Sequence record: NC_010811.2
DNA: 64,000 nt
Reading direction: 5' to 3' (one strand)
The notes under the pieces are model-generated. The model searched no databases. It worked only from the letters and a program-made list of their open reading frames with translations, and had not been told where the DNA came from. A program made the position numbers and the translations under genes. The first letter of the stretch is position 1, and every line of letters starts with the position of its first letter. Shown here piece after piece: positions 3,548-57,688 of this stretch.

Positions 3548-4243
3548 TCAGTAGGTGAGTGTGAAGATGGAACGACCGTCGGCATCGGTAGTGAACGCCG
3601 AGTAGCCACGGACCAAAACGTTAAACTTGGTCACGTTATGCTCGATGGTGGTGCCCGGCGTCATGTGCCCGCGCAGATCGAAGTGATCGACCAGCACTTC
3701 GTTCATGGTGCCAGCTTCGATGATACGCCACATATTGGTCAGGCCATCGCTGTGCGTGTTGTAGCGGATGTAGTACGACTGATGGCCAGCCGTCACCTGA
3801 TTGACGATGTCCTGCGCCACACGCTCGAAGTCTTCGGGCGTTTGCAGATATTCGTCCACCGAGTACTGGAAGGCACCAACACCCGGCTTCTGGTAGAGCT
3901 TGTTGGTGTCCGCGAATCGGCCTTCCTGGATGGTGTTCATCCACACACTGAACACGTCGCTCACTTCCTTGAACTGGGTGAAGAATGCGCCGCGTGTTGT
4001 GCGCGTCGGACACACGAAGTCCACGATCACCCACGAGCCCTGCTCCATGACACAGCGTGCCAGTCGGCCCAGCGTCTTGGCCTGGATCACACGATCCTTC
4101 TCTTCGAACGACAAATGCGTCGTGATGTTGGCGCGCGCCCAGTCCGCGTTGAAGTGAATGGCGCTCAGACGCTTCTGAATGGCGAGGGCCAGCGTGGTCT
4201 TGCCACTGCCGGGCAAGCCTTGAATCATGATGGTCTTGGACAT
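3548..4243 (-). CDS. Adenylylsulfate-kinase-like P-loop kinase with C-terminal extension
   Basis: GLPGSGKTT Walker A, NADWAR, and VIVDFVCPT motifs of the CysC-like family. Confidence 0.75.
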   Translation of the reverse strand: MSKTIMIQGLPGSGKTTLALAIQKRLSAIHFNADWARANITTHLSFEEKDRVIQAKTLGRLARCVMEQGSWVIVDFVCPTRTTRGAFFTQFKEVSDVFSVWMNTIQEGRFADTNKLYQKPGVGAFQYSVDEYLQTPEDFERVAQDIVNQVTAGHQSYYIRYNTHSDGLTNMWRIIEAGTMNEVLVDHFDLRGHMTPGTTIEHNVTKFNVLVRGYSAFTTDADGRSIFTLTY

Positions 4244-18625: not shown

Positions 18626-18656
18626 AAAAAGAAAGGGGACCCAATGAGGGTCCCCT
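18626..18656 (-). terminator. Rho-independent terminator
   Basis: AGGGGACCC/GGGTCCCCT stem followed by TTTCTTTTT on the - strand. Confidence 0.8.
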
Positions 18657-18919: not shown

Positions 18920-19038
18920 TGGAGTCGCGCCCCGAATCGAACGGGATGGGATGTAGCTGAATTCAACCAGACCAACGTGCGGCCGCACGCCTACACCTCT
19001 TATGTATTCATACCAGCAGCCTACTGGACTCACGCGAC
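18920..19038 (-). ncRNA. 119-nt tRNA-like RNA with expanded D region and branched insert replacing the anticodon loop
   Basis: GTCGCGT/GCGCGAC acceptor stem, CCCG-TTCGATT-CGGG T arm, encoded T-CCA; starts 7 nt after the tRNA-Gly CCA. Confidence 0.7.
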
Positions 19039-19045
19039 AAAGACT

Positions 19046-19121
19046 TGGAGCGGGCGACGAGACTCGAACTCGCGACATCTTGCTTGGAAGGCAAGAACTC
19101 TACCAACTGAGCTACGCCCGC
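19046..19121 (-). tRNA. trnG: tRNA-Gly(TCC)
   Basis: GCGGGCGTAGCTCAGTTGGTAGAGTTCTTGCCTTCCAAGCAAGATGTCGCGAGTTCGAGTCTCGTCGCCCGCTCCA; canonical 76-nt cloverleaf with CCA. Confidence 0.95.
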
Positions 19122-19134
19122 AGAAACTGAAACA

Positions 19135-19204
19135 ACTCCCTTAGTGGGTTCGAACCACTGCCTGCCCCCGTCGGGACCGCTCTACCACTCTAAGCTAAAG
19201 GGAA
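19135..19204 (-). ncRNA. tRNA-like RNA with 4-nt anticodon loop (pseudo-tRNA)
   Basis: TTCCCTT/AAGGGAG acceptor, GCTT/GAGC D arm, GTCCC-GACG-GGGGC arm, AGTGG-TTCGAAC-CCACT T arm; no CCA. Confidence 0.7.
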
Positions 19205-19273
19205 TTGAGTTTGCTCACCAGCATGGAGAAGGTGCGCACAGTGCACCCCCTTGGTCCATACACGGCTTGCAGA

Positions 19274-19351
19274 TGGTCCGAGTGAGAGGATTCGAACCTC
19301 CGACCCCCTGATCCCAAATCAGGTGCGCTAACCAGACTGCGCTACACTCGG
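19274..19351 (-). tRNA. trnP: tRNA-Pro(TGG)
   Basis: CCGAGTG/CACTCGG acceptor, CCTGA-TT-TGG-GA-TCAGG anticodon arm, encoded CCA. Confidence 0.95.
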
Positions 19352-19358
19352 TAAACAG

Positions 19359-19745
19359 TTAGACCGCCAACGACGATCTATGAAAAGCGATGTGCCTGAA
19401 CACTGGCAACTCTAGCGTCGGCGGGTTGATGGGTAGTCCCCAAGCTTCCAGCAGTGGATGAAACGTTGAGTCGATCCAGCCTTCGGCAACCACAGAATCG
19501 GAATTTGTGGACAGCGTAGGTAGCGGGCGCGCAGTTCGTCTGTAGTAGACAGACTTATCGACAGCGCCACGCTCATGGGGCAAGCGTTCAACCAAGTTGA
19601 GTTCTACGCCTAGTCGCAGCGCCAAACGCACTTGGTACACGTTGGACCCAAGCATGGACACTAGGTCCAATGCCGCGACCTTTTCAAATTGCTCAGCCGC
19701 CTTCAGAATCTCGATCTGCTGGCGAGTCAGGGTAATCTCTGGCAT
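19359..19745 (-). CDS. Putative winged-HTH protein
   Basis: LTRQQIEIL...LDLVSMLGSNVYQVRLALRLGVELNLVER pattern. Confidence 0.55.
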   Translation of the reverse strand: MPEITLTRQQIEILKAAEQFEKVAALDLVSMLGSNVYQVRLALRLGVELNLVERLPHERGAVDKSVYYRRTARPLPTLSTNSDSVVAEGWIDSTFHPLLEAWGLPINPPTLELPVFRHIAFHRSSLAV

Positions 19746-20091
19746 GGAAGTCCACGTCCTCTACGTCAGTGTTGCTAGGGGCCGCTAGTCGCGGCCGGGG
19801 TTGGGGCAATGCCAGCGCCGTTCGGTCAACACGTGGAGGCGCTTGATACACTTCAAGCGACGGGATGACGAATGTTCTTTCATCTCGCCACACACTGCTC
19901 TTTACCGGTGCCACGCACACATACCACTTCTCGTTGTCGTGTGCGAAGCAGAACGGTTCTTTGGGGCGCAGTTGCGACAGATAGGTGGTGACCACCTGAC
20001 CGTCGCGGTACACTTCGATCTCGCGATCATTCGGCCCTTGCTGCTGGCTTACGTCGCGCTGTGCTACGTACGGCACCAGTTCCATCTTCAC
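19693..20091 (-). CDS. Hypothetical protein
   Basis: ORF packing. Confidence 0.55.
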   Translation of the reverse strand: MKMELVPYVAQRDVSQQQGPNDREIEVYRDGQVVTTYLSQLRPKEPFCFAHDNEKWYVCVAPVKSSVWRDERTFVIPSLEVYQAPPRVDRTALALPQPRPRLAAPSNTDVEDVDFHARDYPDSPADRDSEGG

Positions 20092-20425
20092 CTCCTAACG
20101 CAGACAACATCTTCTGGAGCTTGAGGATGCGCGACTGAAGCTGGACCTTACGGCGCTCAACGATTTCTTTCAGCGCGCCAGCATCTGGGCCGTAGAGCTT
20201 CGCCACCCACTGAAGCTTGGTGACGACCACCACTTCAACGTTGTTGGCGCCTGCGTCAAGCTGCACCAGCGCGTCATCACCGTAGAAGTCGATCTTCTCG
20301 TCGATGATGGCGCGCAACTGAGCGAGCGACCCGCAGAAATCACTGAGCGAGTCGATATAGACAGCGCCCGGCACAGTGATGAGTCGCGTAGTCTTCAGCT
20401 CTTCACGAAAATCTTCAAGACTCAT
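20027..20425 (-). CDS. Hypothetical protein
   Basis: ORF with SD (GAGG) upstream and a C-terminal coiled coil. Confidence 0.65.
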   Translation of the reverse strand: MSLEDFREELKTTRLITVPGAVYIDSLSDFCGSLAQLRAIIDEKIDFYGDDALVQLDAGANNVEVVVVTKLQWVAKLYGPDAGALKEIVERRKVQLQSRILKLQKMLSALGGEDGTGAVRSTARRKPAARAE

Positions 20426-20440
20426 AGGAACCTCTAAGGG

Positions 20441-20830
20441 TTAGTCAAGAAATACGGCGTGGCCGTCTTGAATCCAGCCATGCCACAGACCACCAGCCGA
20501 ACCGTCGATCGACGGATGGACGGTGATGTTGTCGAATGTGGCTGCGTCAGGATCAGGACTGCACAACCACGTGATGTTGGAATACGCGTCGCCTGTAACG
20601 CCTTGGACTCGCGTCCAGCCGTGTTCAGGATTCTTACCCTCGGCGATCTGCAAATCGGCCAACGCCGCAGTGAACAGCGCGTGCTGCTCACGCCAGCCAA
20701 CAGACTGGAACATGCACGACTGATAGAAGCTCTTGTCGGGCATCGGGCAGCGGAAGATGAAGCCAACGCGCTGTCCGTCGGCCACCAGCCAACGAGGGTC
20801 AAGCGTGTTGAGTGGGATTCGCGTTGGCAT
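20441..20830 (-). CDS. DUF6527-like hypothetical protein
   Basis: C-terminal ITVHPSIDGSAGGLWHGWIQDG; start at ATG 20830. Confidence 0.5.
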   Translation of the reverse strand: MPTRIPLNTLDPRWLVADGQRVGFIFRCPMPDKSFYQSCMFQSVGWREQHALFTAALADLQIAEGKNPEHGWTRVQGVTGDAYSNITWLCSPDPDAATFDNITVHPSIDGSAGGLWHGWIQDGHAVFLD

Positions 20831-21017
20831 TAGCCGTCTGCTCCTCGAAGATTTCCATGCGCGCCAGCACATAGCGGATGTCGTCGATGCTGTAGTACTC
20901 ACCGAACAGCTGAACGAACGGACGACCACCGTACATGTACGGGGGATTGGTGTCCACCTCCTTCACGAGGTCGCGCTGTGCGCGGCGCAGTGCCGATTCA
21001 CGTTCTTGGGGCGTCAT
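20799..21017 (-). CDS. Hypothetical protein
   Basis: ATG 21017 (MTPQERE...). Confidence 0.55.
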   Translation of the reverse strand: MTPQERESALRRAQRDLVKEVDTNPPYMYGGRPFVQLFGEYYSIDDIRYVLARMEIFEEQTANANANPTQHA

Positions 21018-21163
21018 ATACGTACAGGTCAGGTTTGGTTCCGAGACGAGCGGCAACACCGGCAGACGTCAGCAGCAAGTCCTTGTATCGGCCAAGCGGA
21101 ATCTGGTCGATGTACTCGATCACCGGCTTCTGCCCGAAGTGGACATTGAAATCCATCGCCGCC

Positions 21164-21511
21164 TCACTTACAGTCAGAAGCTGTGATGAACAGCGACCAT
21201 TCGGGGTCGTTCTTGATGGTCGGATTTGCGAAGAATTGAATCGGCTGATCCACGCCCTGCTCCTTCATGAGAGCAGCGTATTCCTGACACAGGACCAACT
21301 TGTTCTCACCGTTGAGAGCGGGATAGTAGGTGGGTCGCGCGCACACCGTGATCAGCTGCACGAGCTCGATGTCGGAGTTCTGAGACTTGATCTGGTTGAA
21401 AGCTTCACGCAGCTTGGGAATCGCGTCGTTGGCTTCCTGCATAGTCTGCAAATTTCCAAGGACATTCTTCATTGCCGCAGTAACGGTCTGAGCGTGCTTG
21501 GATTGATTCAT
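21164..21511 (-). CDS. Hypothetical protein
   Basis: ORF with GAGG SD. Confidence 0.65.
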   Translation of the reverse strand: MNQSKHAQTVTAAMKNVLGNLQTMQEANDAIPKLREAFNQIKSQNSDIELVQLITVCARPTYYPALNGENKLVLCQEYAALMKEQGVDQPIQFFANPTIKNDPEWSLFITASDCK

Positions 21512-21543
21512 GTGAACCTCGAGGGTTAAACAGATTTGCTTTC

Positions 21544-21669
21544 TGGGCGACCGGAAGGAATCGAACCTCCGTCTGCAGGTACCAATCTCAGCATTCGATC
21601 CGGCCTGTTAAGGTTCCCGCGTGTCTAGCGCCGAGATGCACTGCAATTCTGCCACTGAACTACGATCGC
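21544..21669 (-). ncRNA. 126-nt tRNA-like RNA with a 62-nt structured segment in place of the anticodon loop
   Basis: GCGATCG/CGGTCGC acceptor, GTTC-AGTGGCA-GAAT D arm, TGCAG/CTGCA stem, GGAGG-TTCGATT-CCTTC T arm. Confidence 0.8.
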
Positions 21670-21706
21670 GTTGATGCTTTCTGGGCAGCCCTCGGCAGAA
21701 GGCGTC

Positions 21707-21952
21707 CTAGAAAGTTGTTACTTCGTACTTGCGTCCGTGAAACTGGGCGATCCAAATCTCCTGGTCCTGATGCGTGCAGAAGATCTGGTCACCAAGATCT
21801 TCGCGACGCACGAATATTGTGCATTTGATCTTGGCAAACTTCTCGTCAGCATGAAGCACTTGGTAGGTATTCCACTGGCCTTTGAGCTCGACCAAAGAGC
21901 CTTTCGTTAGCAGTTGCATGTCGAAGAACGGTTGAAAGTCCAGGGATTTCAT
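21707..21952 (-). CDS. Hypothetical protein inserted in the RNA-gene cluster
   Basis: 81-aa ORF with GGAG SD. Confidence 0.6.
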   Translation of the reverse strand: MKSLDFQPFFDMQLLTKGSLVELKGQWNTYQVLHADEKFAKIKCTIFVRREDLGDQIFCTHQDQEIWIAQFHGRKYEVTTF

Positions 21953-22000
21953 CGTAGCTGATCTCCTCCCTGGACTTCGGGCACTAACCCCAATCTAACT

Positions 22001-22178
22001 GTTCGTTACATCCACCCTAGTTACGATAATGAGAAAACCCGACCCTCTACCGCTGAGGTACCGCCGTCCTTAATCAACTCGTGAGAATTGACTAAGGCAC
22101 GGCGGACGGGATTCGAACCCGCGTCTTTCAGGCTTAACCATGGCTTCTTAGAGTAATCGCCATGGCAGGGTGCCGAAC
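22001..22178 (-). ncRNA. Circularly permuted tRNA-like RNA (YrlA/Y-RNA-like), copy B
   Basis: 5' to 3' order: CCTGA, AAGAC, T arm GCGGG-TTCGAAT-CCCGT, CCGCCGT, hairpin linker, ACGGCGG, D arm CCTC-AGCGGTA-GAGG, TCGGG. The ends pair (CACCCTG/TAGGGTG, GTTCG/CGAAC). Confidence 0.75.
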
Positions 22179-22210
22179 TACTGAACTTAGATTGCTTACA
22201 GGTCACACGT

Positions 22211-22385
22211 TAGAGGTAATACGCGAACGATAATCGAACTCGACGCCTGATTAGGGCGTTGCGTCTACCAGTTTCGCCACTCCTACATCAAACACGCTGC
22301 AAGCAACACGCTTGATGCAGGAGGTTGGATTCGAACCAACAGTGAGTTCCGTATAACGCTAACGACTACGCTAACGCTTCCTCTA
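22211..22385 (-). ncRNA. Circularly permuted tRNA-like RNA (YrlA/Y-RNA-like), copy A
   Basis: T arm GTTGG-TTCGAAT-CCAAC and CTCCTGC precede GTAGGAG and a Leu-type D arm (GGCGAAACTGGTAGACGC). The ends pair (TAGAGG/CCTCTA, TAGTCG/CGATTA, GAACTC/GAGTTC). Confidence 0.7.
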
Positions 22386-22390
22386 TGCTT

Positions 22391-22397
22391 TATTTAC
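22391..22397 (-). promoter_or_regulatory. GTAAATA phage promoter motif driving the RNA cluster
   Basis: CAGCAGTAAATA 6 nt upstream of the predicted 5' end of RNA A; preceded by the GGGACTACC/GGTAGTCCC hairpin (22402-22429). Confidence 0.65.
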
Positions 22398-22436
22398 TGC
22401 TGGGACTACCGCCGAGTGTTGGTAGTCCCGAAATCC

Positions 22437-23234
22437 TTACACCTGATTGCTGGCCGGCGACGTGCGCAGCGGTCCCAGGATCAGGTCGGCGAGACGCTGG
22501 CCGATGTTGTCAACCGTTTCCACCTGCACGCTGTTGGCGCGAGTACGAGCGGCCTTGGTCTCGACGATCAGTTCATCGATGATGGCCAGCGCCTGCGCCT
22601 TCTGCAGTGCAGTAGTGGCGCCACTCACCGTGTTGATGGTGAAGGTGCCGACCACCTTGTCGGTCGTCACTTCCTTGACTTGTGCCGGATGCTTGTCGGT
22701 TGCTTCGTACAGCACGACCGGGGTCATCACCTTCTCGGTCTTCGTGGCGACTTGCGGCTGCGTGGCGCGCCACGTGCCGGGTTGCGCAGCGCTTGCGTCC
22801 GGCGCCCAGCCCTTCGACGCGTCGAGCGTCGGAATCTGGGTGAACAGCTTGCGGAGTTCGTTGAGGCGGACTTCCAGCCCCATGAGCTCGTCCACCGGCA
22901 CGTTGGTGGCAATTGCCTGACCGTTGTACATCAGATCGGCGACAGCCTTGGTGTTGGTCACGTTCTTCGTGAAGAGCGTCTGCTCGGCCTTGGCCCAATA
23001 GGTGAGATAGTAGTCGAGCGTGGCGAGCACCGTCGTCGGCAGTTCCTTGTCCTGACGCGCCGCCGCTTCGATCTTGGCATTCGACGGATCGTCGGTCAGC
23101 AGTTCGAGGGTCTTCGTGAAGCCGGTGAAATACTGATCGCCCTTGGCGAACTTGTTCTGCGTGTCAGCGGTCAGCTGATCACGTGCGTTGATCACAGTCT
23201 TTTCAGCTGCGAGAATTTCGTGGAGTTGTGCCAT
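22437..23234 (-). CDS. Conserved-looking helical hypothetical protein
   Basis: MAQLHEILAAEK...; strong phage-like codon usage; own GTAAATA motif at 23284-23290. Confidence 0.8.
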   Translation of the reverse strand: MAQLHEILAAEKTVINARDQLTADTQNKFAKGDQYFTGFTKTLELLTDDPSNAKIEAAARQDKELPTTVLATLDYYLTYWAKAEQTLFTKNVTNTKAVADLMYNGQAIATNVPVDELMGLEVRLNELRKLFTQIPTLDASKGWAPDASAAQPGTWRATQPQVATKTEKVMTPVVLYEATDKHPAQVKEVTTDKVVGTFTINTVSGATTALQKAQALAIIDELIVETKAARTRANSVQVETVDNIGQRLADLILGPLRTSPASNQV

Positions 23235-40581: not shown

Positions 40582-40899
40582 ATGTCCCTACACCAATCGC
40601 ACCCGCACCTGAACTACGCTCTTGAGGTGTACATCTCAAAGCATCAGTACATCGCATCGCCTCTGCAAGTCGTGAGCTACCTCACTGCGCCGACTTTCAA
40701 GGCGGATCTCGACGAAATGGGCGTAGATCCGGCACAAGCCGGTGCGCAAGCCGACACGTGGCTCAGTGCACCACTGAACATGGCCCTCTTCCTGAAAGAA
40801 GTGATCGAGGAAAACGAGCCGTCGGTACTCGGCGCTGAACATCACACTGGAGCCGAGGCGCTGGCCGCTCTGCTCTGGGTCGCAGACAATCTCGCGTAA
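40582..40899 (+). CDS. Early hypothetical protein
   Basis: First gene after the early promoter. Confidence 0.75.
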   Translation: MSLHQSHPHLNYALEVYISKHQYIASPLQVVSYLTAPTFKADLDEMGVDPAQAGAQADTWLSAPLNMALFLKEVIEENEPSVLGAEHHTGAEALAALLWVADNLA

Positions 40900-40909
40900 G
40901 GGGTTCAAC

Positions 40910-41608
40910 ATGTCCAACGTCTACACCGCAGACTTCGGCGCAACCAAGTTCCAGACCACGCGTCGTGGGGTCAACGCCACGTCGCCCATCCTCAAGAATG
41001 GCGTCAAGGTCGCCACGCTCCACGATGTGGCCGAGCGCATCTCCACCGACGTGGTGTTCGTCAACACCCAGGAGCGCTTTGCCTTCTTGGAGGCCGCTCA
41101 GTCGCACGGGTTCACGGGGTCCGAGCACTTCGCCATCTCCGAGTTCGCTCGCCATCTGCTGGATAAGGCGTCCAACGCTTTCCTGGAGGCTGTCGAGCCA
41201 TCCAAGCCCAAGCGCAAGGCCAAGCCGTTGCCCGCTCCTACGCCCGAGCCACAACGCACAGTTCCAGAAGCGGGCGCGGACTTCATCCGCGAAGCGTTCG
41301 GCATCGAAACGCAGTTCGAGCGGCAAGCGTACCAACCCAAGCGCAAGCGCCTGCTCTTCTCGTCGTCGGGCAAGGTTCCATCGTTTCCTGAGTTGGAACG
41401 CATCTGTCGCCAGTTCACTGCGCAGCGCTGCCAAAACGTCAACACGTCGGTCTTCATCAGCGAAACGCCAGTGTTCCACTCCAGTACGTGGAGCATTCGC
41501 GAGCTGACTGTATCGTTCGATGGGCACCGAGTAGTGTTCACCAAGTACCACAACGCTACTGACCTGCACATCGAGCTCATCGATCGCAGCGCTGTCTACG
41601 AGGAGTAA
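40910..41608 (+). CDS. Early hypothetical protein
   Basis: ORF packing. Confidence 0.75.
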   Translation: MSNVYTADFGATKFQTTRRGVNATSPILKNGVKVATLHDVAERISTDVVFVNTQERFAFLEAAQSHGFTGSEHFAISEFARHLLDKASNAFLEAVEPSKPKRKAKPLPAPTPEPQRTVPEAGADFIREAFGIETQFERQAYQPKRKRLLFSSSGKVPSFPELERICRQFTAQRCQNVNTSVFISETPVFHSSTWSIRELTVSFDGHRVVFTKYHNATDLHIELIDRSAVYEE

Positions 41609-41611
41609 ATC

Positions 41612-42040
41612 ATGGAAAAGTTCTTCGCAGAGACAGTCGTTACCCATGAAGGATTCGGGCGTGGGGTTGTTCTCGCAGAGACGGCGCCCGACGTGTACGA
41701 GGTGCGATTCGATCGGGTCATCGACCCTTTCGTCACCGATTACGAATGCTCTCGTACTCATACGGTGAGCGCCGAGCATCTAGAGCGTGTGGTCCTCACG
41801 TTGGCCGACTTTAAGCCCGGCGACAAGCTGGAATTCACCCAGCGCTTCCGTGTCGGCGACAAGACCGTGACCGAGGTGCGGACCGCTGTTGTCACCCTCA
41901 TCAACTGGGAAGGTAACGGCCTCGTGTCGTACACAGGTCGCGTTCAAGAAGGCATGATGCGGACGGGCTCCGGCGCGTTCGACCCGGCAGCGGTGGGCAC
42001 CAAGCCGTTCGGTTTCCACTGCGCAGTGCGTAAGGTCTAA
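41612..42040 (+). CDS. Hypothetical protein (SH3-like segments)
   Basis: VTHEGFGRGVV; FKPGDKLEF. Confidence 0.7.
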   Translation: MEKFFAETVVTHEGFGRGVVLAETAPDVYEVRFDRVIDPFVTDYECSRTHTVSAEHLERVVLTLADFKPGDKLEFTQRFRVGDKTVTEVRTAVVTLINWEGNGLVSYTGRVQEGMMRTGSGAFDPAAVGTKPFGFHCAVRKV

Positions 42041-42050
42041 GGAGTGGGTC

Positions 42051-42380
42051 ATGAAGTTCGTCAACAGCAAGAAGGTCAAGGACCATGCGTACGACCTGTA
42101 TCTGGTCCGTCAGCAGAAGCGTGAGCTCGCTGAGAAGATGCGCGAGTTGGAAGCGCAAGAGCAGGCGTTGTCCGCGTTTCTGCGCGCAAAGCGCGCCGAC
42201 GAGGACTTCCAGTTTGCAGATCCCGAAGGCTATCTGATGGAAACGGATTTCGTGCCGGGGTCGCGTATGGATGTGAACGACGCGCAGGTCCGCCGAGACT
42301 ACGCCAAGATGGGTAAGAAGGTGCCCATGAAGAAGAGCGAGTGGGTCACGGTCAAAGTCCGCTACATCCTGGAGAAGTAA
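42051..42380 (+). CDS. Hypothetical coiled-coil protein
   Basis: AAGGAG SD. Confidence 0.75.
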   Translation: MKFVNSKKVKDHAYDLYLVRQQKRELAEKMRELEAQEQALSAFLRAKRADEDFQFADPEGYLMETDFVPGSRMDVNDAQVRRDYAKMGKKVPMKKSEWVTVKVRYILEK

Positions 42381-55039: not shown

Positions 55040-57688
55040 GTGACAACCAAGAAACAGACCAAGTACGATAGCACTAGCATCGAGACTCAACGCTTCCCTC
55101 ACAACGTCCGGGCGTCGCCAGCCATGTACATCGGCGGAGTCGATGCCTACGGCCTGTGGACTGTGACCAAGGAACTGCTGGACAACGGCGCCGACGAGTT
55201 CATGGCGCAACGCAACGACGCCGTGTTCCTGCACTTTGACGCTGATGGCAGCTACTGGGTCTGGGATCACGGGCACGGCATCCCACAGGGCGTCAAGACG
55301 TTCAAGCTGAATCTGAACGGCAAGGTGGTCACGCAGAAGATGCCGACCATGCAAGCGGTGTTCGGCGAGCTGCACACGTCGGGCAAATATCGCAGTGAGG
55401 CGTACGCAGTGTCCATCGGCAGTCACGGCGTCGGGTCCAAGGGCACCAACGCGACGGCCGAGTACTTCGATGTCTGGACGCTGTACGAAGGCCGCTGGAG
55501 CAGCATCAAGTTCAAGAAGGGTGAGCTGGCACAGCCGGTGAAGGAATGCTCGGCCCCCAAGCTGCCTACTGGCAAGCCGCTGAAGAAGGGCACGCTCATC
55601 CACTTCAAGCCGGACGCCAGCATCTTCAGCGTCAAGAGCTTCCCGCCGTCGATGGCTGTGGAATGGGCGACGGTCATGTCGTACATGAACCCCGGCCTGT
55701 CGATCCACCTGAGCAGCAAGAAGGGTGCGAAGACGTACCTCAGCAAGAAGGGGCCGCAGGAGTATATCGAGCATCGTCTGGCTGCGCTGAAGACGGAAGG
55801 CGAGCGTCAGATGTTCGTGCATCACGACGACCTGTCGGATGTGGTGTTGGCATTCACCAACTACGACGGTTGCGACATCCGCGGCATGACCAACTCCGTG
55901 ACCAATGGTCAAGGCGGCAAGCACGTGGACAGTGTGACGGGTGCCGTCTATGCTGGCCTCAAGCCGTGGATCAAGACCAAGAAGGTGAAGGAAGACGGCA
56001 AGGTGAAGGTGGTCCCTGCCTTCCGTGAGACCGACCTGAAGGAAGGGCTCGTTGGTCTGGTCAACGCCAAGCTGCACAAGGCCCAGTTCTCGTCGCAGGA
56101 CAAGGCACGACTCACAGACAACCGGCTGGGCAAGGACTACGAAGAGGCGATAACCAAGAAGTTCGTCGCCTTCTTCAAGGAGAACAAGGCGCTGGCCCAG
56201 CGTTTGTGTGATCGTGCCACCAAGCTCAACGAACTGAAGACCAAGTTCACGATGAGCAAGAAGGCAGCAGCTACGTTGAACGCTGTGAAGCGCAATGGGC
56301 TGCCCGCCAAGTACGCAGCGTTCAACTCGGACACGAAGGTTCACGATCGTGAGCTGTTCCTCGTTGAAGGCGACAGCGCAGGTGGTTCGCTGAAGGATGC
56401 GCGCTTGCCCTATCAGGCGGTCCTCCCACTCAAGGGTAAGGTGCTCAACGCACTGAAGGACAACAAGGGCAAGGCGCTGGAGTCGGATGAAATCATCAAC
56501 ATCCTGGCGGCTATCGGCTACGACACGAAGGCCGCTGACCCGCTGTCCAAGCTCACCGTGGGCAAGATCATCTGTCTGGCTGACCCGGACCCGGATGGTC
56601 CGTTCGTCGCAGACACGCAGGTGCGTTTCCGCTACAAGCGCACTGCGAATGACGGCCAGCCGCAACTCGCCACCATTGAATGCTTGGCGGAGATGGCGAA
56701 TACTCCTGGCCAAGAATTCGAGGTTCCGGTCTACGTGAACGGCAAGGAGCAGTGGGCACCGGCCACCGCGCAGTTGGAACGCAACGTGGACACGCTGGTG
56801 AGCATGGAGATCGGCGGTCACAAGTACAAGGTGAGCGAGGACCACAAGTTCCTGGTGATCCGTACGCCGTCCACGCGCAATCGTGAAGGGCTGACGTTCA
56901 GCGAGCATCTGTGCTTCATGCGTGCTGCCGACATGAACATCGGCGACCGTGTGTACGCGCCGCACATGGAGCAGGGGCGCCGCGACTACAACCGTCAGGA
57001 CAAGACGAGTGGCCACGGATTCATGGCTGTGAACAAGCTGCGAGTCCAGAAGCAGAGCGCTCCGGTCCCCGTCTACTGCTTGACGGTGCCGCGCCATCAT
57101 CACTTCCTGCTGCCGTCGGGTGTTGTGTCTAGCAACTGTCACATCAACAGCCTGCTCCTGGGTCTGTTCTACAAGTACCTGCCCGACCTGTTCGACAAGG
57201 GCATGGTGTACGTGAGCGCGGCCCCCGAGTTCTACTCGATCTACAAGGATCAGCTGGTGACCGGCGACACGCTGAGCGCAGTGCAGGTGAAGCTCAAGAA
57301 GCTGAAGGCTCCGACGTCCACCGCCATCCACCACTTGAAGGGGTGGGGCGAGGCCAGCGAGAACCTGATGCGTGTGCTGGCAGCAGACCCGGCAACTCGT
57401 CGCCTCATCAAGATCAAGGCCATCTCTCACGACGACAAGGTGGACTTCGTCAAGGTGATGAACGAGGACGTGGAGTACCGCCGTCGCATGCTAGGCTTGC
57501 CACAGAACGCGAAGGGCGACGAAGATGAGGCGCCGCCCGCCGCGAAGAAGGCACCGGCTAAGAAGGCGGCGCAGCCCAAGGCCATCCAGATGCGAGCCCG
57601 CGACGGACGTCCCCTGCGCGGCAAGATCATCGTGAAGCAGCCGCCCGTAAAGAAAACGGGTACCCGTCAACGTAAGGAGGCAGCATGA
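55040..57688 (+). CDS. gyrB: Type IIA topoisomerase large subunit (GyrB/ParE-like) with intein
   Basis: ELLDNGADE, DHGHGIP, HGVGSKGTNA, LFLVEGDSAGG, PLKGKVLN, DPDPDG|intein|CHI, KGWGE. Confidence 0.92.
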   Translation: MTTKKQTKYDSTSIETQRFPHNVRASPAMYIGGVDAYGLWTVTKELLDNGADEFMAQRNDAVFLHFDADGSYWVWDHGHGIPQGVKTFKLNLNGKVVTQKMPTMQAVFGELHTSGKYRSEAYAVSIGSHGVGSKGTNATAEYFDVWTLYEGRWSSIKFKKGELAQPVKECSAPKLPTGKPLKKGTLIHFKPDASIFSVKSFPPSMAVEWATVMSYMNPGLSIHLSSKKGAKTYLSKKGPQEYIEHRLAALKTEGERQMFVHHDDLSDVVLAFTNYDGCDIRGMTNSVTNGQGGKHVDSVTGAVYAGLKPWIKTKKVKEDGKVKVVPAFRETDLKEGLVGLVNAKLHKAQFSSQDKARLTDNRLGKDYEEAITKKFVAFFKENKALAQRLCDRATKLNELKTKFTMSKKAAATLNAVKRNGLPAKYAAFNSDTKVHDRELFLVEGDSAGGSLKDARLPYQAVLPLKGKVLNALKDNKGKALESDEIINILAAIGYDTKAADPLSKLTVGKIICLADPDPDGPFVADTQVRFRYKRTANDGQPQLATIECLAEMANTPGQEFEVPVYVNGKEQWAPATAQLERNVDTLVSMEIGGHKYKVSEDHKFLVIRTPSTRNREGLTFSEHLCFMRAADMNIGDRVYAPHMEQGRRDYNRQDKTSGHGFMAVNKLRVQKQSAPVPVYCLTVPRHHHFLLPSGVVSSNCHINSLLLGLFYKYLPDLFDKGMVYVSAAPEFYSIYKDQLVTGDTLSAVQVKLKKLKAPTSTAIHHLKGWGEASENLMRVLAADPATRRLIKIKAISHDDKVDFVKVMNEDVEYRRRMLGLPQNAKGDEDEAPPAAKKAPAKKAAQPKAIQMRARDGRPLRGKIIVKQPPVKKTGTRQRKEAA
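56600..57136 (+). mobile_element. 179-aa mini-intein, Pro1, class-3-like
   Basis: PFVADT (block A), VSEDHKF (block B), VYCLTV (block F with Cys), GVVSSN|C (block G). Confidence 0.88.

Follow-up and report, generated by a model that had tools for sequence, protein, structure and literature searches.

Circularly permuted tRNA-like RNAs adjoin DUF7873 genes in Ralstonia phage phiRSL1 and in distantly related phages

Two of five unusual tRNA-shaped elements in the genome of Ralstonia phage phiRSL1 belong, as comparison with other phages shows, to one conserved family of circularly permuted, non-decoding RNAs that resemble transfer RNA (tRNA). The window analyzed is the final 64 kb of this 231,255-bp jumbo phage genome (NC_010811.2, matched at 100% identity; genome coordinates are window coordinates plus 167255). 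There the five elements, here called elements 1, 3, 5, 6, and 7, lie beside a normal tRNA-Pro and a normal tRNA-Gly, every one of them on the minus strand (Table 1). A preliminary description of this DNA had reported five nonstandard elements beside two normal tRNAs, two of the five being circularly permuted, and we find all of them where it placed them. Conservation and covariation show the permuted pair, elements 6 and 7, to be genuine structured RNA genes under strong selection for shape. Comparison of gene neighborhoods shows their family to sit immediately 3' of genes for DUF7873 proteins in phages of Beta-, Gamma-, and Alphaproteobacteria, of Vibrio, and of Actinobacteria. DUF7873 and the permuted tRNA-like RNA apparently make up a widespread and undescribed phage module. 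No entry for the RNA family was found in Rfam 15, and the searchable literature (permuted tRNA in phages, DUF7873, phage Y RNA) does not describe it.

The genes of the family begin with a 5' flank (and variable loop), followed by the T arm, a 7-nucleotide (nt) acceptor 3' strand, and N-CCA. A spacer hairpin of about 30 nt comes next, and then the acceptor 5' strand, the D arm (and anticodon stem), and a 3' flank; pairing between the 5' and 3' flanks closes the RNA. The acceptor stem is always 7 bp and is stacked on a T stem of 5 bp. Among 61 copies, the discriminator base is not conserved (G in 22, U in 16, A in 16, and C in 6), and the triplet that follows it is CCA in 41 and CCT or CCC in 12 more. 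The spacer, usually 24 to 37 nt, extends the hairpin, in most cases through CCA:UGG pairing. In the phiRSL1-like clade, a single-stranded AUCGU motif lies 33 to 34 nt 3' of the acceptor 5' strand. Both phiRSL1 elements fold far better than shuffled sequence, with z scores of -4.3 for element 6 and -4.4 for element 7. When the complete phiRSL1 genome was scanned for the permuted layout, these two elements and no others emerged, compared with 0.2 in each shuffled genome. Element 7 has a body like that of a class-II tRNA-Leu, in which the D arm reads GCG-AAACTGGTAGA-CGC and the opening falls in the long variable arm. Its anticodon-type loop varies among relatives (CUAAUCA, UUUCUAA, and a 6-nt AGCGAU), the CUAAUCA form having C at position 37.

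The closest relative of phiRSL1 is L003, a 215-kb viral contig whose DNA polymerase is 53% identical to that of the phage. It carries both permuted elements, in unchanged order, directly 3' of its homolog of open reading frame (ORF) 270. Further lineages were gathered by pattern scans and protein-guided scans. In 12 hand-segmented copies of element 6, every acceptor (84/84), T-stem (60/60), and D-stem (44/44) cell of the alignment is paired, as are 59 of the 60 anticodon-stem cells, with three to five pair types at most positions. From an unguided MAFFT alignment, RNAalifold recovered the permuted cloverleaf of element 6 with 35 pairs, 24 of which show double changes; for element 7, across seven lineages, it recovered 24 pairs, 15 with double changes. 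The closing stems covary as well, reading CACCCT/AGGGTG, CGAGTT/AACTCG, AAGGTT/AGCCTT, or CAAGCT/AGCTTG in element 6 and AGAGG/CCTCT or ACAGG/CCTGT in element 7. In the alignment of 61 copies, which was aligned by model and leans towards the structure, a standard pair fills 94.9% of the cells and all 30 pairs show double-sided change. Covariation in that alignment is 0.776, compared with 0.18 after shuffling and at most 0.13 when pairing partners are slid by 1 to 3 columns. The covarying copies come from phages whose DUF7873 proteins share only 32 to 68% identity.

The preliminary description had proposed a covariance model built from related phages. Such a model, R1, made from ten relatives with phiRSL1 excluded, finds element 6 at 92.2 bits (E value of 3e-20) as its sole strong match in the 231-kb genome and scores element 7 at 25.5 bits. 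Held-out copies from Vibrio, Rhizobium, Arthrobacter, and Gordonia phages score 33 to 61 bits. True tRNA-tRNA junctions, a known type of false positive for the Y RNA family YrlA, score 15 to 33 bits; on these scores, and because the acceptor strands pair within one element and covary, an artifact of adjacent tRNAs was rejected. Element 6 starts about 265 nt 3' of the ORF270 stop codon on the coding strand, inside the distance of about 1 kb within which an R1 match assigns an RNA to the family. The RNA follows DUF7873 in 15 of 15 lineages read by eye, including Klebsiella phage FBKp24, Rhizobium phages RHph_TM30 and TM16, Vibrio phage D505, Arthrobacter phage Racecar, and Gordonia phage Keelan. 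On further viral contigs, R1 matches downstream of DUF7873 at an E value of 1e-4 or less in 69 of 80 loci, always on the coding strand and starting about 60 to 1,000 nt past the stop codon. Across the 80 loci there were no matches on the opposite strand, and 8 lay upstream of DUF7873. The other 11 loci include 5 with a weaker match in the same place, 1 of the L003 lineage with an HNH-split RNA, and 1 without downstream DNA.

ORF270 is 58 to 68% identical in relatives. DUF7873 comprises 417 protein clusters at an E value of 1e-5 or less; its genes are present on 179 viral contigs and in 75 deposited phage records, among them phages of Klebsiella (the FBKp24 group), Vibrio, Rhizobium, Arthrobacter, and Gordonia. 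The viral contigs were scanned with a 56-sequence alignment, and that scan was far richer than a metagenome scan with a three-sequence alignment, which gave 2 loci only, both of the L003 lineage. An AlphaFold model of the protein has a predicted local distance difference test score (pLDDT) of 80 and a predicted template modeling score (pTM) of 0.68. Foldseek found no match to it in PDB or BFVD, and profile and sequence searches found no PHROG, no PDB sequence match, and no entry in PADLOC or NCBIfam. DUF7873 genes are found inside tRNA gene arrays. ORF082 of phiRSL1 is an RtcB RNA ligase (E value of 1.6e-125; genome positions 40868-42121; L024), and in the relative L022 a PolyA_pol/CCA-adding-type nucleotidyltransferase and a PF09414 RNA ligase (1-435 and 1867-2892) are encoded just upstream of DUF7873. 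In light of these enzymes, the setting is one of tRNA metabolism and repair.

Among Rfam families, the best full-length match of element 6 is YrlA (RF02553), the Y RNA of bacteria and mycobacteriophages. The gathering score of this family is 69 bits; element 6 scores 32 bits, and seven relatives score 29 to 38 bits. YrlA and the phage RNAs share a permuted T arm, a closed acceptor-type stem, a D arm, and paired 5' and 3' termini, and in both families two RNAs often stand side by side adjoining a protein gene. Ribonuclease P (RNase P) cuts the Mycobacterium smegmatis YrlA, the only one whose acceptor stem measures 7 bp; this RNA bears CCA in vivo, and the Rsr complex retains both of its halves (Chen et al., PMC4201824). 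The RNase P determinant is the 12-bp acceptor/T helix (PMC4201824). The phage RNAs share the 7-bp acceptor stem, and on that basis they too would be cut by RNase P and end in CCA. However, the candidate partner gene of the phage RNAs is DUF7873 and not Ro60/TROVE, most of them encode a CCA that in YrlA is added, and element 6 adds a 5' hairpin and, in the phiRSL1 clade, the AUCGU motif. The criterion of Chen et al. (2014) for YrlA is a position within about 4 kb of a gene for a TROVE-domain Ro60/Rsr protein. No TROVE domain was found by Pfam in 48 phiRSL1 ORFs scanned, which covered the neighbors and the large unannotated ORFs with some small ORFs outside the scan. Of 26 copies, 25 lack the Ro-binding motif GNCGAAN0-1G in the 5' flank, and the lone match overlaps the anticodon-type stem. 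Membership in YrlA was rejected on these grounds. The YrlA-like mimicry put forward in the preliminary description stands as a resemblance of elements 6 and 7, and the Ro-like partner that it also suggested gives way to DUF7873 as the conserved neighbor.

Rfam also aligns both permuted elements, over part of their length, to the permuted segment of the beta-proteobacterial transfer-messenger RNA (tmRNA; beta_tmRNA, RF01850). Two-piece tmRNA, the product of permuted ssrA genes, has the same order of T arm, acceptor 3' strand with CCA, hairpin, and acceptor 5' strand, and the predicted maturation of the phage RNAs is alike. Unlike two-piece tmRNA, the phage RNAs have neither a tag frame nor pseudoknots but do have a complete D arm. 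ARAGORN found no tmRNA, and position 3:70 is never G-U in 12 tabulated copies (G-C or another pair). With no tag frame and no G3:U70, identity with tmRNA was rejected. The stable RNAs C and D of phage T4 are small, encoded in a tRNA cluster, co-processed with tRNAs, and of unknown function. Like the phage mimics, they are small RNAs within a phage tRNA operon, a likeness drawn from description only, and neither permutation nor linkage to a DUF7873-like gene is known for them.

The spacers of the permuted elements hold additional sequences in some relatives. In L003 the element 6 spacer, which is the loop of the acceptor hairpin, houses an ORF for a 160-amino-acid HNH_3 endonuclease (L003 3719-4201; Pfam), an insertion that would be tolerable if the spacer loop is dispensable or removed. 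The element 7 spacer contains a related domain of about 140 nt in L003 (3378-3520), L006 (4371-4224, minus strand), and L021 (4413-4549). This domain opens with CUGCUGUAUGU and finishes near GAGUAUGGCAG, where phiRSL1 has 30 nt. In L006, an ORF between DUF7873 and element 7 (5098-4450, minus strand) was judged by eye to be GIY-YIG-like; it and the HNH_3 ORF are both of the homing-endonuclease type. A linker, UAAGCAAY, is conserved between elements 7 and 6 (window 22201-22190; also in L003, L006, L020, L021, and L028), reads UUAGCAAC even in Arthrobacter phage Racecar, and could mark either a site of processing or the point where element 6 truly begins. In element 6, pairing of the 5' hairpin loop with the 3' flank as a pseudoknot is perfect in L003 (GAAUAGA/UCUAUUC), but it could not be reproduced in the other lineages and is not claimed. 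No self-cleaving ribozymes or other Rfam families were found in the flanks at an E value of 10 or less.

We propose, with even confidence for and against, that elements 6 and 7 of phiRSL1 are RNase P-processed, two-piece tRNA mimics that have the DUF7873 protein as a partner and act in tRNA-related biology. A GTAAATA promoter at 22397 would transcribe elements 7 and 6 as the head of a unit that would further carry nine small ORFs, two true tRNAs, and three more tRNA derivatives. The exact 12-bp acceptor/T helix and the encoded N-CCA would make the RNAs substrates of RNase P. Cleavage 5' of the acceptor 5' strand and 3' trimming to CCA would yield a two-piece, base-paired tRNA mimic presenting a tRNA-like acceptor end. 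A comparable maturation has been shown for M. smegmatis YrlA and for two-piece tmRNA. Two-piece maturation is the most economical reading of the conserved N-CCA. The mimic and the DUF7873 protein would then form a ribonucleoprotein (RNP) engaging tRNA-recognizing machinery, be it in repair, surveillance, or counterdefense, and the complex would be a nonhomologous counterpart of Ro60-YrlA. More tentatively, DUF7873 and its mimic or mimics could be a widespread phage RNP that has so far gone unrecognized, an independent and nonhomologous counterpart of Ro60-Y RNA. Its two-piece RNA would offer a genuine CCA end, perhaps aminoacylated, to the translation, tRNA-repair, or tRNA-targeting immune machinery of the host.

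Several observations weigh against the proposed mimic-DUF7873 complex. The link between DUF7873 and the RNA is one of gene adjacency, and the modeled DUF7873 structure resembles no RNA-binding or other known fold in PDB or BFVD. Neither permuted element of phiRSL1 encodes an exact CCA, element 7 having A-TCA and element 6 having G-CCT, and the CCA:UGG pairing in the extended hairpin may slow RNase P. The spacer is fairly constant in length and its apical stem, AUUC/GAGU, is partly conserved, and therefore the spacer is possibly functional and not discarded. The AUCGU motif is restricted to the phiRSL1-like clade.

The RNAs might instead act independently of DUF7873, as decoys or inhibitors of host tRNA-targeting defenses or toxins that bind the elbow and acceptor end. 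All five elements are non-decoding yet keep elbow and acceptor features, they travel with phage tRNA arrays, and the conserved N-CCA makes enzymes that target the acceptor end conceivable opponents. However, anticodon nucleases are unlikely targets, because element 6 lacks an anticodon loop and that of element 7 varies among relatives. PADLOC showed no relation to known defenses, and the near-obligatory linkage to DUF7873 would be left unexplained; we consider decoys rather unlikely. It seems distinctly improbable that the elements are mainly RNA-processing or stability signals, lacking a function in trans and punctuating the transcript as RNase P entry sites and protective ends. Their place at the head of and inside a unit mixing ORFs and tRNAs would suit such a role, and the 12-bp helix is what RNase P recognizes. 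However, punctuation could be left to an ordinary tRNA and would require neither the permuted order and the closing stems nor the conserved flanks and the anticodon-type stem that covaries, and in phiRSL1 a separate promoter stands between DUF7873 and the RNAs.

The permuted and split tRNA genes of Cyanidioschyzon merolae and Nanoarchaeum give rise to decoding tRNAs by cutting at a bulge-helix-bulge and ligation. The phage RNAs could be genes of the C. merolae kind, with flanks joined, for example by the phage RtcB, and the acceptor spacer removed. As in those genes, the sequence for the 3' half of the cloverleaf precedes that for the 5' half. The phage genes also encode CCA, and phiRSL1 has an RtcB. 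Unlike in C. merolae, the flanks show no bulge-helix-bulge (by eye, no dedicated search tool having been used), and no anticodon loop is recoverable. The nucleotides adjoining the anticodon-type stem are unpaired and would not re-form a conserved loop of 7 nt that has U33 and, at position 37, a purine. When a loop was rebuilt from the flanks of element 6, the implied anticodons were inconsistent between relatives. A motif stands at a fixed distance in the 3' flank and no splicing endonuclease was seen, and permuted decoding tRNAs are very improbable. Equally hard to credit are true YrlA Y RNAs binding a Ro60/Rsr protein of the host or one encoded elsewhere. Their topology is identical and the subthreshold Rfam match is consistent, and RtcB often adjoins Rsr in bacteria (PMC4201824; PMC7790460). 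However, that match is half the gathering threshold, the Ro-binding motif and, among the 48 ORFs scanned, a TROVE domain are missing, and the invariant neighbor across 80 contigs is DUF7873. Nonfunctional debris, in the form of rearranged or decaying tRNA genes, is ruled out for elements 6 and 7 by their conservation and covariation across phages with such divergent DUF7873 proteins. For elements 1, 3, and 5, the lack of orthologs, the fold z scores (-1.0, -2.4, and 0.0, respectively), and the likeness of element 3 to a tRNA with a 3-nt loop deletion speak for decay. Against it stand their intact acceptor and T arms, the encoded CCA of element 1, and the recurrence of analogs in relatives, and as an account of the array debris has very little likelihood.

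Table 1. Features of the phiRSL1 RNA region and analogous elements in related phages. Coordinates are those of the 64-kb window unless a contig handle is given.
Feature	Coordinates	Strand	Details or evidence
ORF270, DUF7873 protein	22437..23234	-	Conserved upstream neighbor; Pfam PF25283, E value of 1.1e-68
GTAAATA promoter-like motif	22391..22397	-	Directly 5' of element 7
Element 7, permuted tRNA-like RNA, opened in variable arm	22212..22384	-	Fold, RNAalifold, R1
Element 7 closing stem		-	AGAGG/CCTCT
Element 7 T arm	22340-22324	-	
Element 7 acceptor 3' strand	22323-22317	-	Followed by A-TCA
Element 7 acceptor 5' strand	22286-22280	-	
Element 7 D arm	22277-22261	-	
Element 7 hairpin	22259-22243	-	ACGCC-CTAATCA-GGCGT
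Element 6, permuted tRNA-like RNA, opened at anticodon loop	22013..22172	-	Fold, Rfam, R1, covariation
Element 6 closing stem		-	CACCCT/AGGGTG
Element 6 5' hairpin	22165-22138	-	
Element 6 anticodon-type stem	22132-22128 with 22042-22038	-	
Element 6 T arm	22122-22106	-	
Element 6 acceptor	22105-22099 with 22067-22061	-	
Element 6 G-CCT	22098-22095	-	
Element 6 D arm	22058-22044	-	
Element 6 motif	22029-22019	-	UUAUCGUAACU
Element 5, tRNA-like RNA with 62-nt insert	21546..21669	-	Rfam tRNA 41.3 bits
tRNA-Pro(UGG), normal	19274..19351	-	ARAGORN; Rfam 68.6 bits
Element 3, full cloverleaf, 4-nt anticodon loop GACG	19135..19204	-	ARAGORN 'tRNA-???', fold
tRNA-Gly(UCC), normal	19046..19121	-	ARAGORN; Rfam 69.7 bits
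Element 1, tRNA-like RNA, enlarged three-hairpin body	18920..19038	-	Sequence and fold
Intrinsic-terminator-like hairpin and T run	18634..18656	-	Ends unit begun at 22397
Analogous tRNA-like	L010 1907-2064		
Analogous tRNA-like	L012 5796-5929		
Analogous tRNA-like	L020 1287-1509		
Analogous tRNA-like	L014 5312-5395		
Analogous tRNA-like	L018 3870-3963		
Analogous tRNA-like	L022 6389-6502		Fold z score of -4.1
Analogous tRNA-like	L012 1220-1343		Insert with second complete T arm, GTTAGG-TTCGATT-CCTAAC

Elements 1, 3, and 5 are likewise non-decoding as encoded. In element 1 the T loop is TTCGATT, the acceptor is paired, and U-CCA is encoded, its last base at 18920; hairpins totaling about 65 nt occupy the site of the anticodon arm. 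Its acceptor and T helix together measure 11 bp (7/4 or 6/5), not 12. In element 5 the insert is a helix and hairpin that prolongs the anticodon stem. That none of the five elements decodes had been claimed from the start and agrees with the 4-nt loop of element 3, the large inserts of elements 1 and 5, and the missing loop of element 6. In the comparison with ordinary tRNA models, which had been suggested as well, element 5 reached the Rfam tRNA (RF00005) gathering score, element 3 was called by ARAGORN only, and elements 1, 6, and 7 were not called; element 1 drew no call from ARAGORN or from Rfam even at an E value of 10 or less. BLAST searches of the phiRSL1 genome and relatives found no orthologs of elements 1, 3, and 5 and no homologs beyond their T arms. 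The stretch from ORF269 to ORF259 in which they lie is absent from L003, where a glycosyltransferase gene stands directly 3' of the permuted pair. Their folding energies do not stand out. Spacing around them is normal for a tRNA array, with 13 nt and 7 nt separating them from tRNA-Gly, and analogous tRNA-like elements with enlarged or nonstandard anticodon arms occur in related phages (Table 1). Introns were rejected for elements 1 and 5, in which the inserts prolong the anticodon stem and there is neither a bulge-helix-bulge nor a U33-type loop remnant; a group I intron would not fit into 62 nt. Mobile elements were also rejected, the inserts being unique in the phiRSL1 genome and relatives. 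We read elements 1, 3, and 5 as lineage-specific tRNA scaffolds with extra hairpins or as recently disabled tRNAs.

The preliminary description had treated the five elements as a single panel in which stems hold through changed sequences and selection acts on shape. Only elements 6 and 7 are conserved, and the five do not form one panel. Relatives allowed the stems to be tested for these two only, and there covariation bears out both the persistence of the stems and selection on shape; elements 1, 3, and 5, being without orthologs, do not share in that conclusion. The earlier interpretation as non-decoding, YrlA-like mimicry is partly supported, as right in kind for two of the five elements.

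The array has a transcriptional context of its own. The window contains 17 copies of GTAAATA where 0.83 would be expected, an excess of about 20-fold, and the orientation of the motif tracks gene direction. Sites include 4275, 9831, 16706, 22391, 23284, 37678, and 63504, and the strand of the motif flips together with gene direction near 37.2 to 37.7 kb. Very probably this is the promoter motif of phiRSL1 itself. The region holds only one copy; all seven RNAs are 3' of it, and none has a copy of its own, in agreement with the co-orientation downstream of GTAAATA noted earlier. A TAAATA-type motif is also found 5' of element 7 in L003, L021, and L022. With a single GTAAATA, after which a strong terminator-like hairpin is the first signal, one transcription unit running from 22397 to 18634 appears to take in the two tRNAs, ORF269 to ORF260, and all five elements.

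Annotation of the region and of its counterparts may be revised in several places. GenBank annotates only tRNA-Gly and tRNA-Pro here, under the labels RSL1_RNA1 and RSL1_RNA3, and therefore an RNA2 between the two tRNAs would have been dropped. Element 3 is probably that RNA2, the 'tRNA pseudogene' counted for phiRSL1 and left out of the GenBank record. ORF260 is annotated to start at 18975 (TTG), so that it overlaps element 1 in its 3' half. A likelier start lies just 3' of the CCA end of element 1, at an in-frame ATG (18903-18901) with GAGG before it (18912-18909), and the 5' end of ORF260 that overlaps element 1 is likely spurious. Also probably spurious is ORF261, which runs antisense to tRNA-Gly on the plus strand (18957-19130). 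In Klebsiella phage vB_KpM_FBKp24, a feature annotated as 'tRNA-OTHER / tRNA-Sup-TTA' (NC_061421.1 46041-46120; L017 5018-5097) is the misread 5' flank and T arm of a permuted element, which R1 scores at 90.8 bits (L017 5060-5154). Gene 126 of Gordonia phage Keelan (L029 3768-4013) is annotated as a hypothetical coding sequence that overlies two permuted elements (one at 3760-3832, the other at 3909-4009); it is unlikely to be a real gene. Elsewhere in the window, a gyrase B/Toprim-like ORF (55040-57688, plus strand) has a weak Intein_splicing match (E value of 2e-4, residues 585 to 698) and may encode an intein-containing topoisomerase subunit.

R1 renders the RNA family searchable, and the findings correct the annotation of the FBKp24 'tRNA-Sup-TTA', Keelan gene 126, and the 5' end of ORF260. 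If the proposed partnership is true, it would provide a first handle on Pfam DUF7873 and a second protein context for YrlA-type mimicry, in which the permuted tRNA scaffold would be a reusable module beyond Ro60. The RNAs found in phage tRNA arrays bear on why tRNA-rich phages carry more than decoding tRNAs, and there may be a connection to tRNA-directed bacterial immunity.

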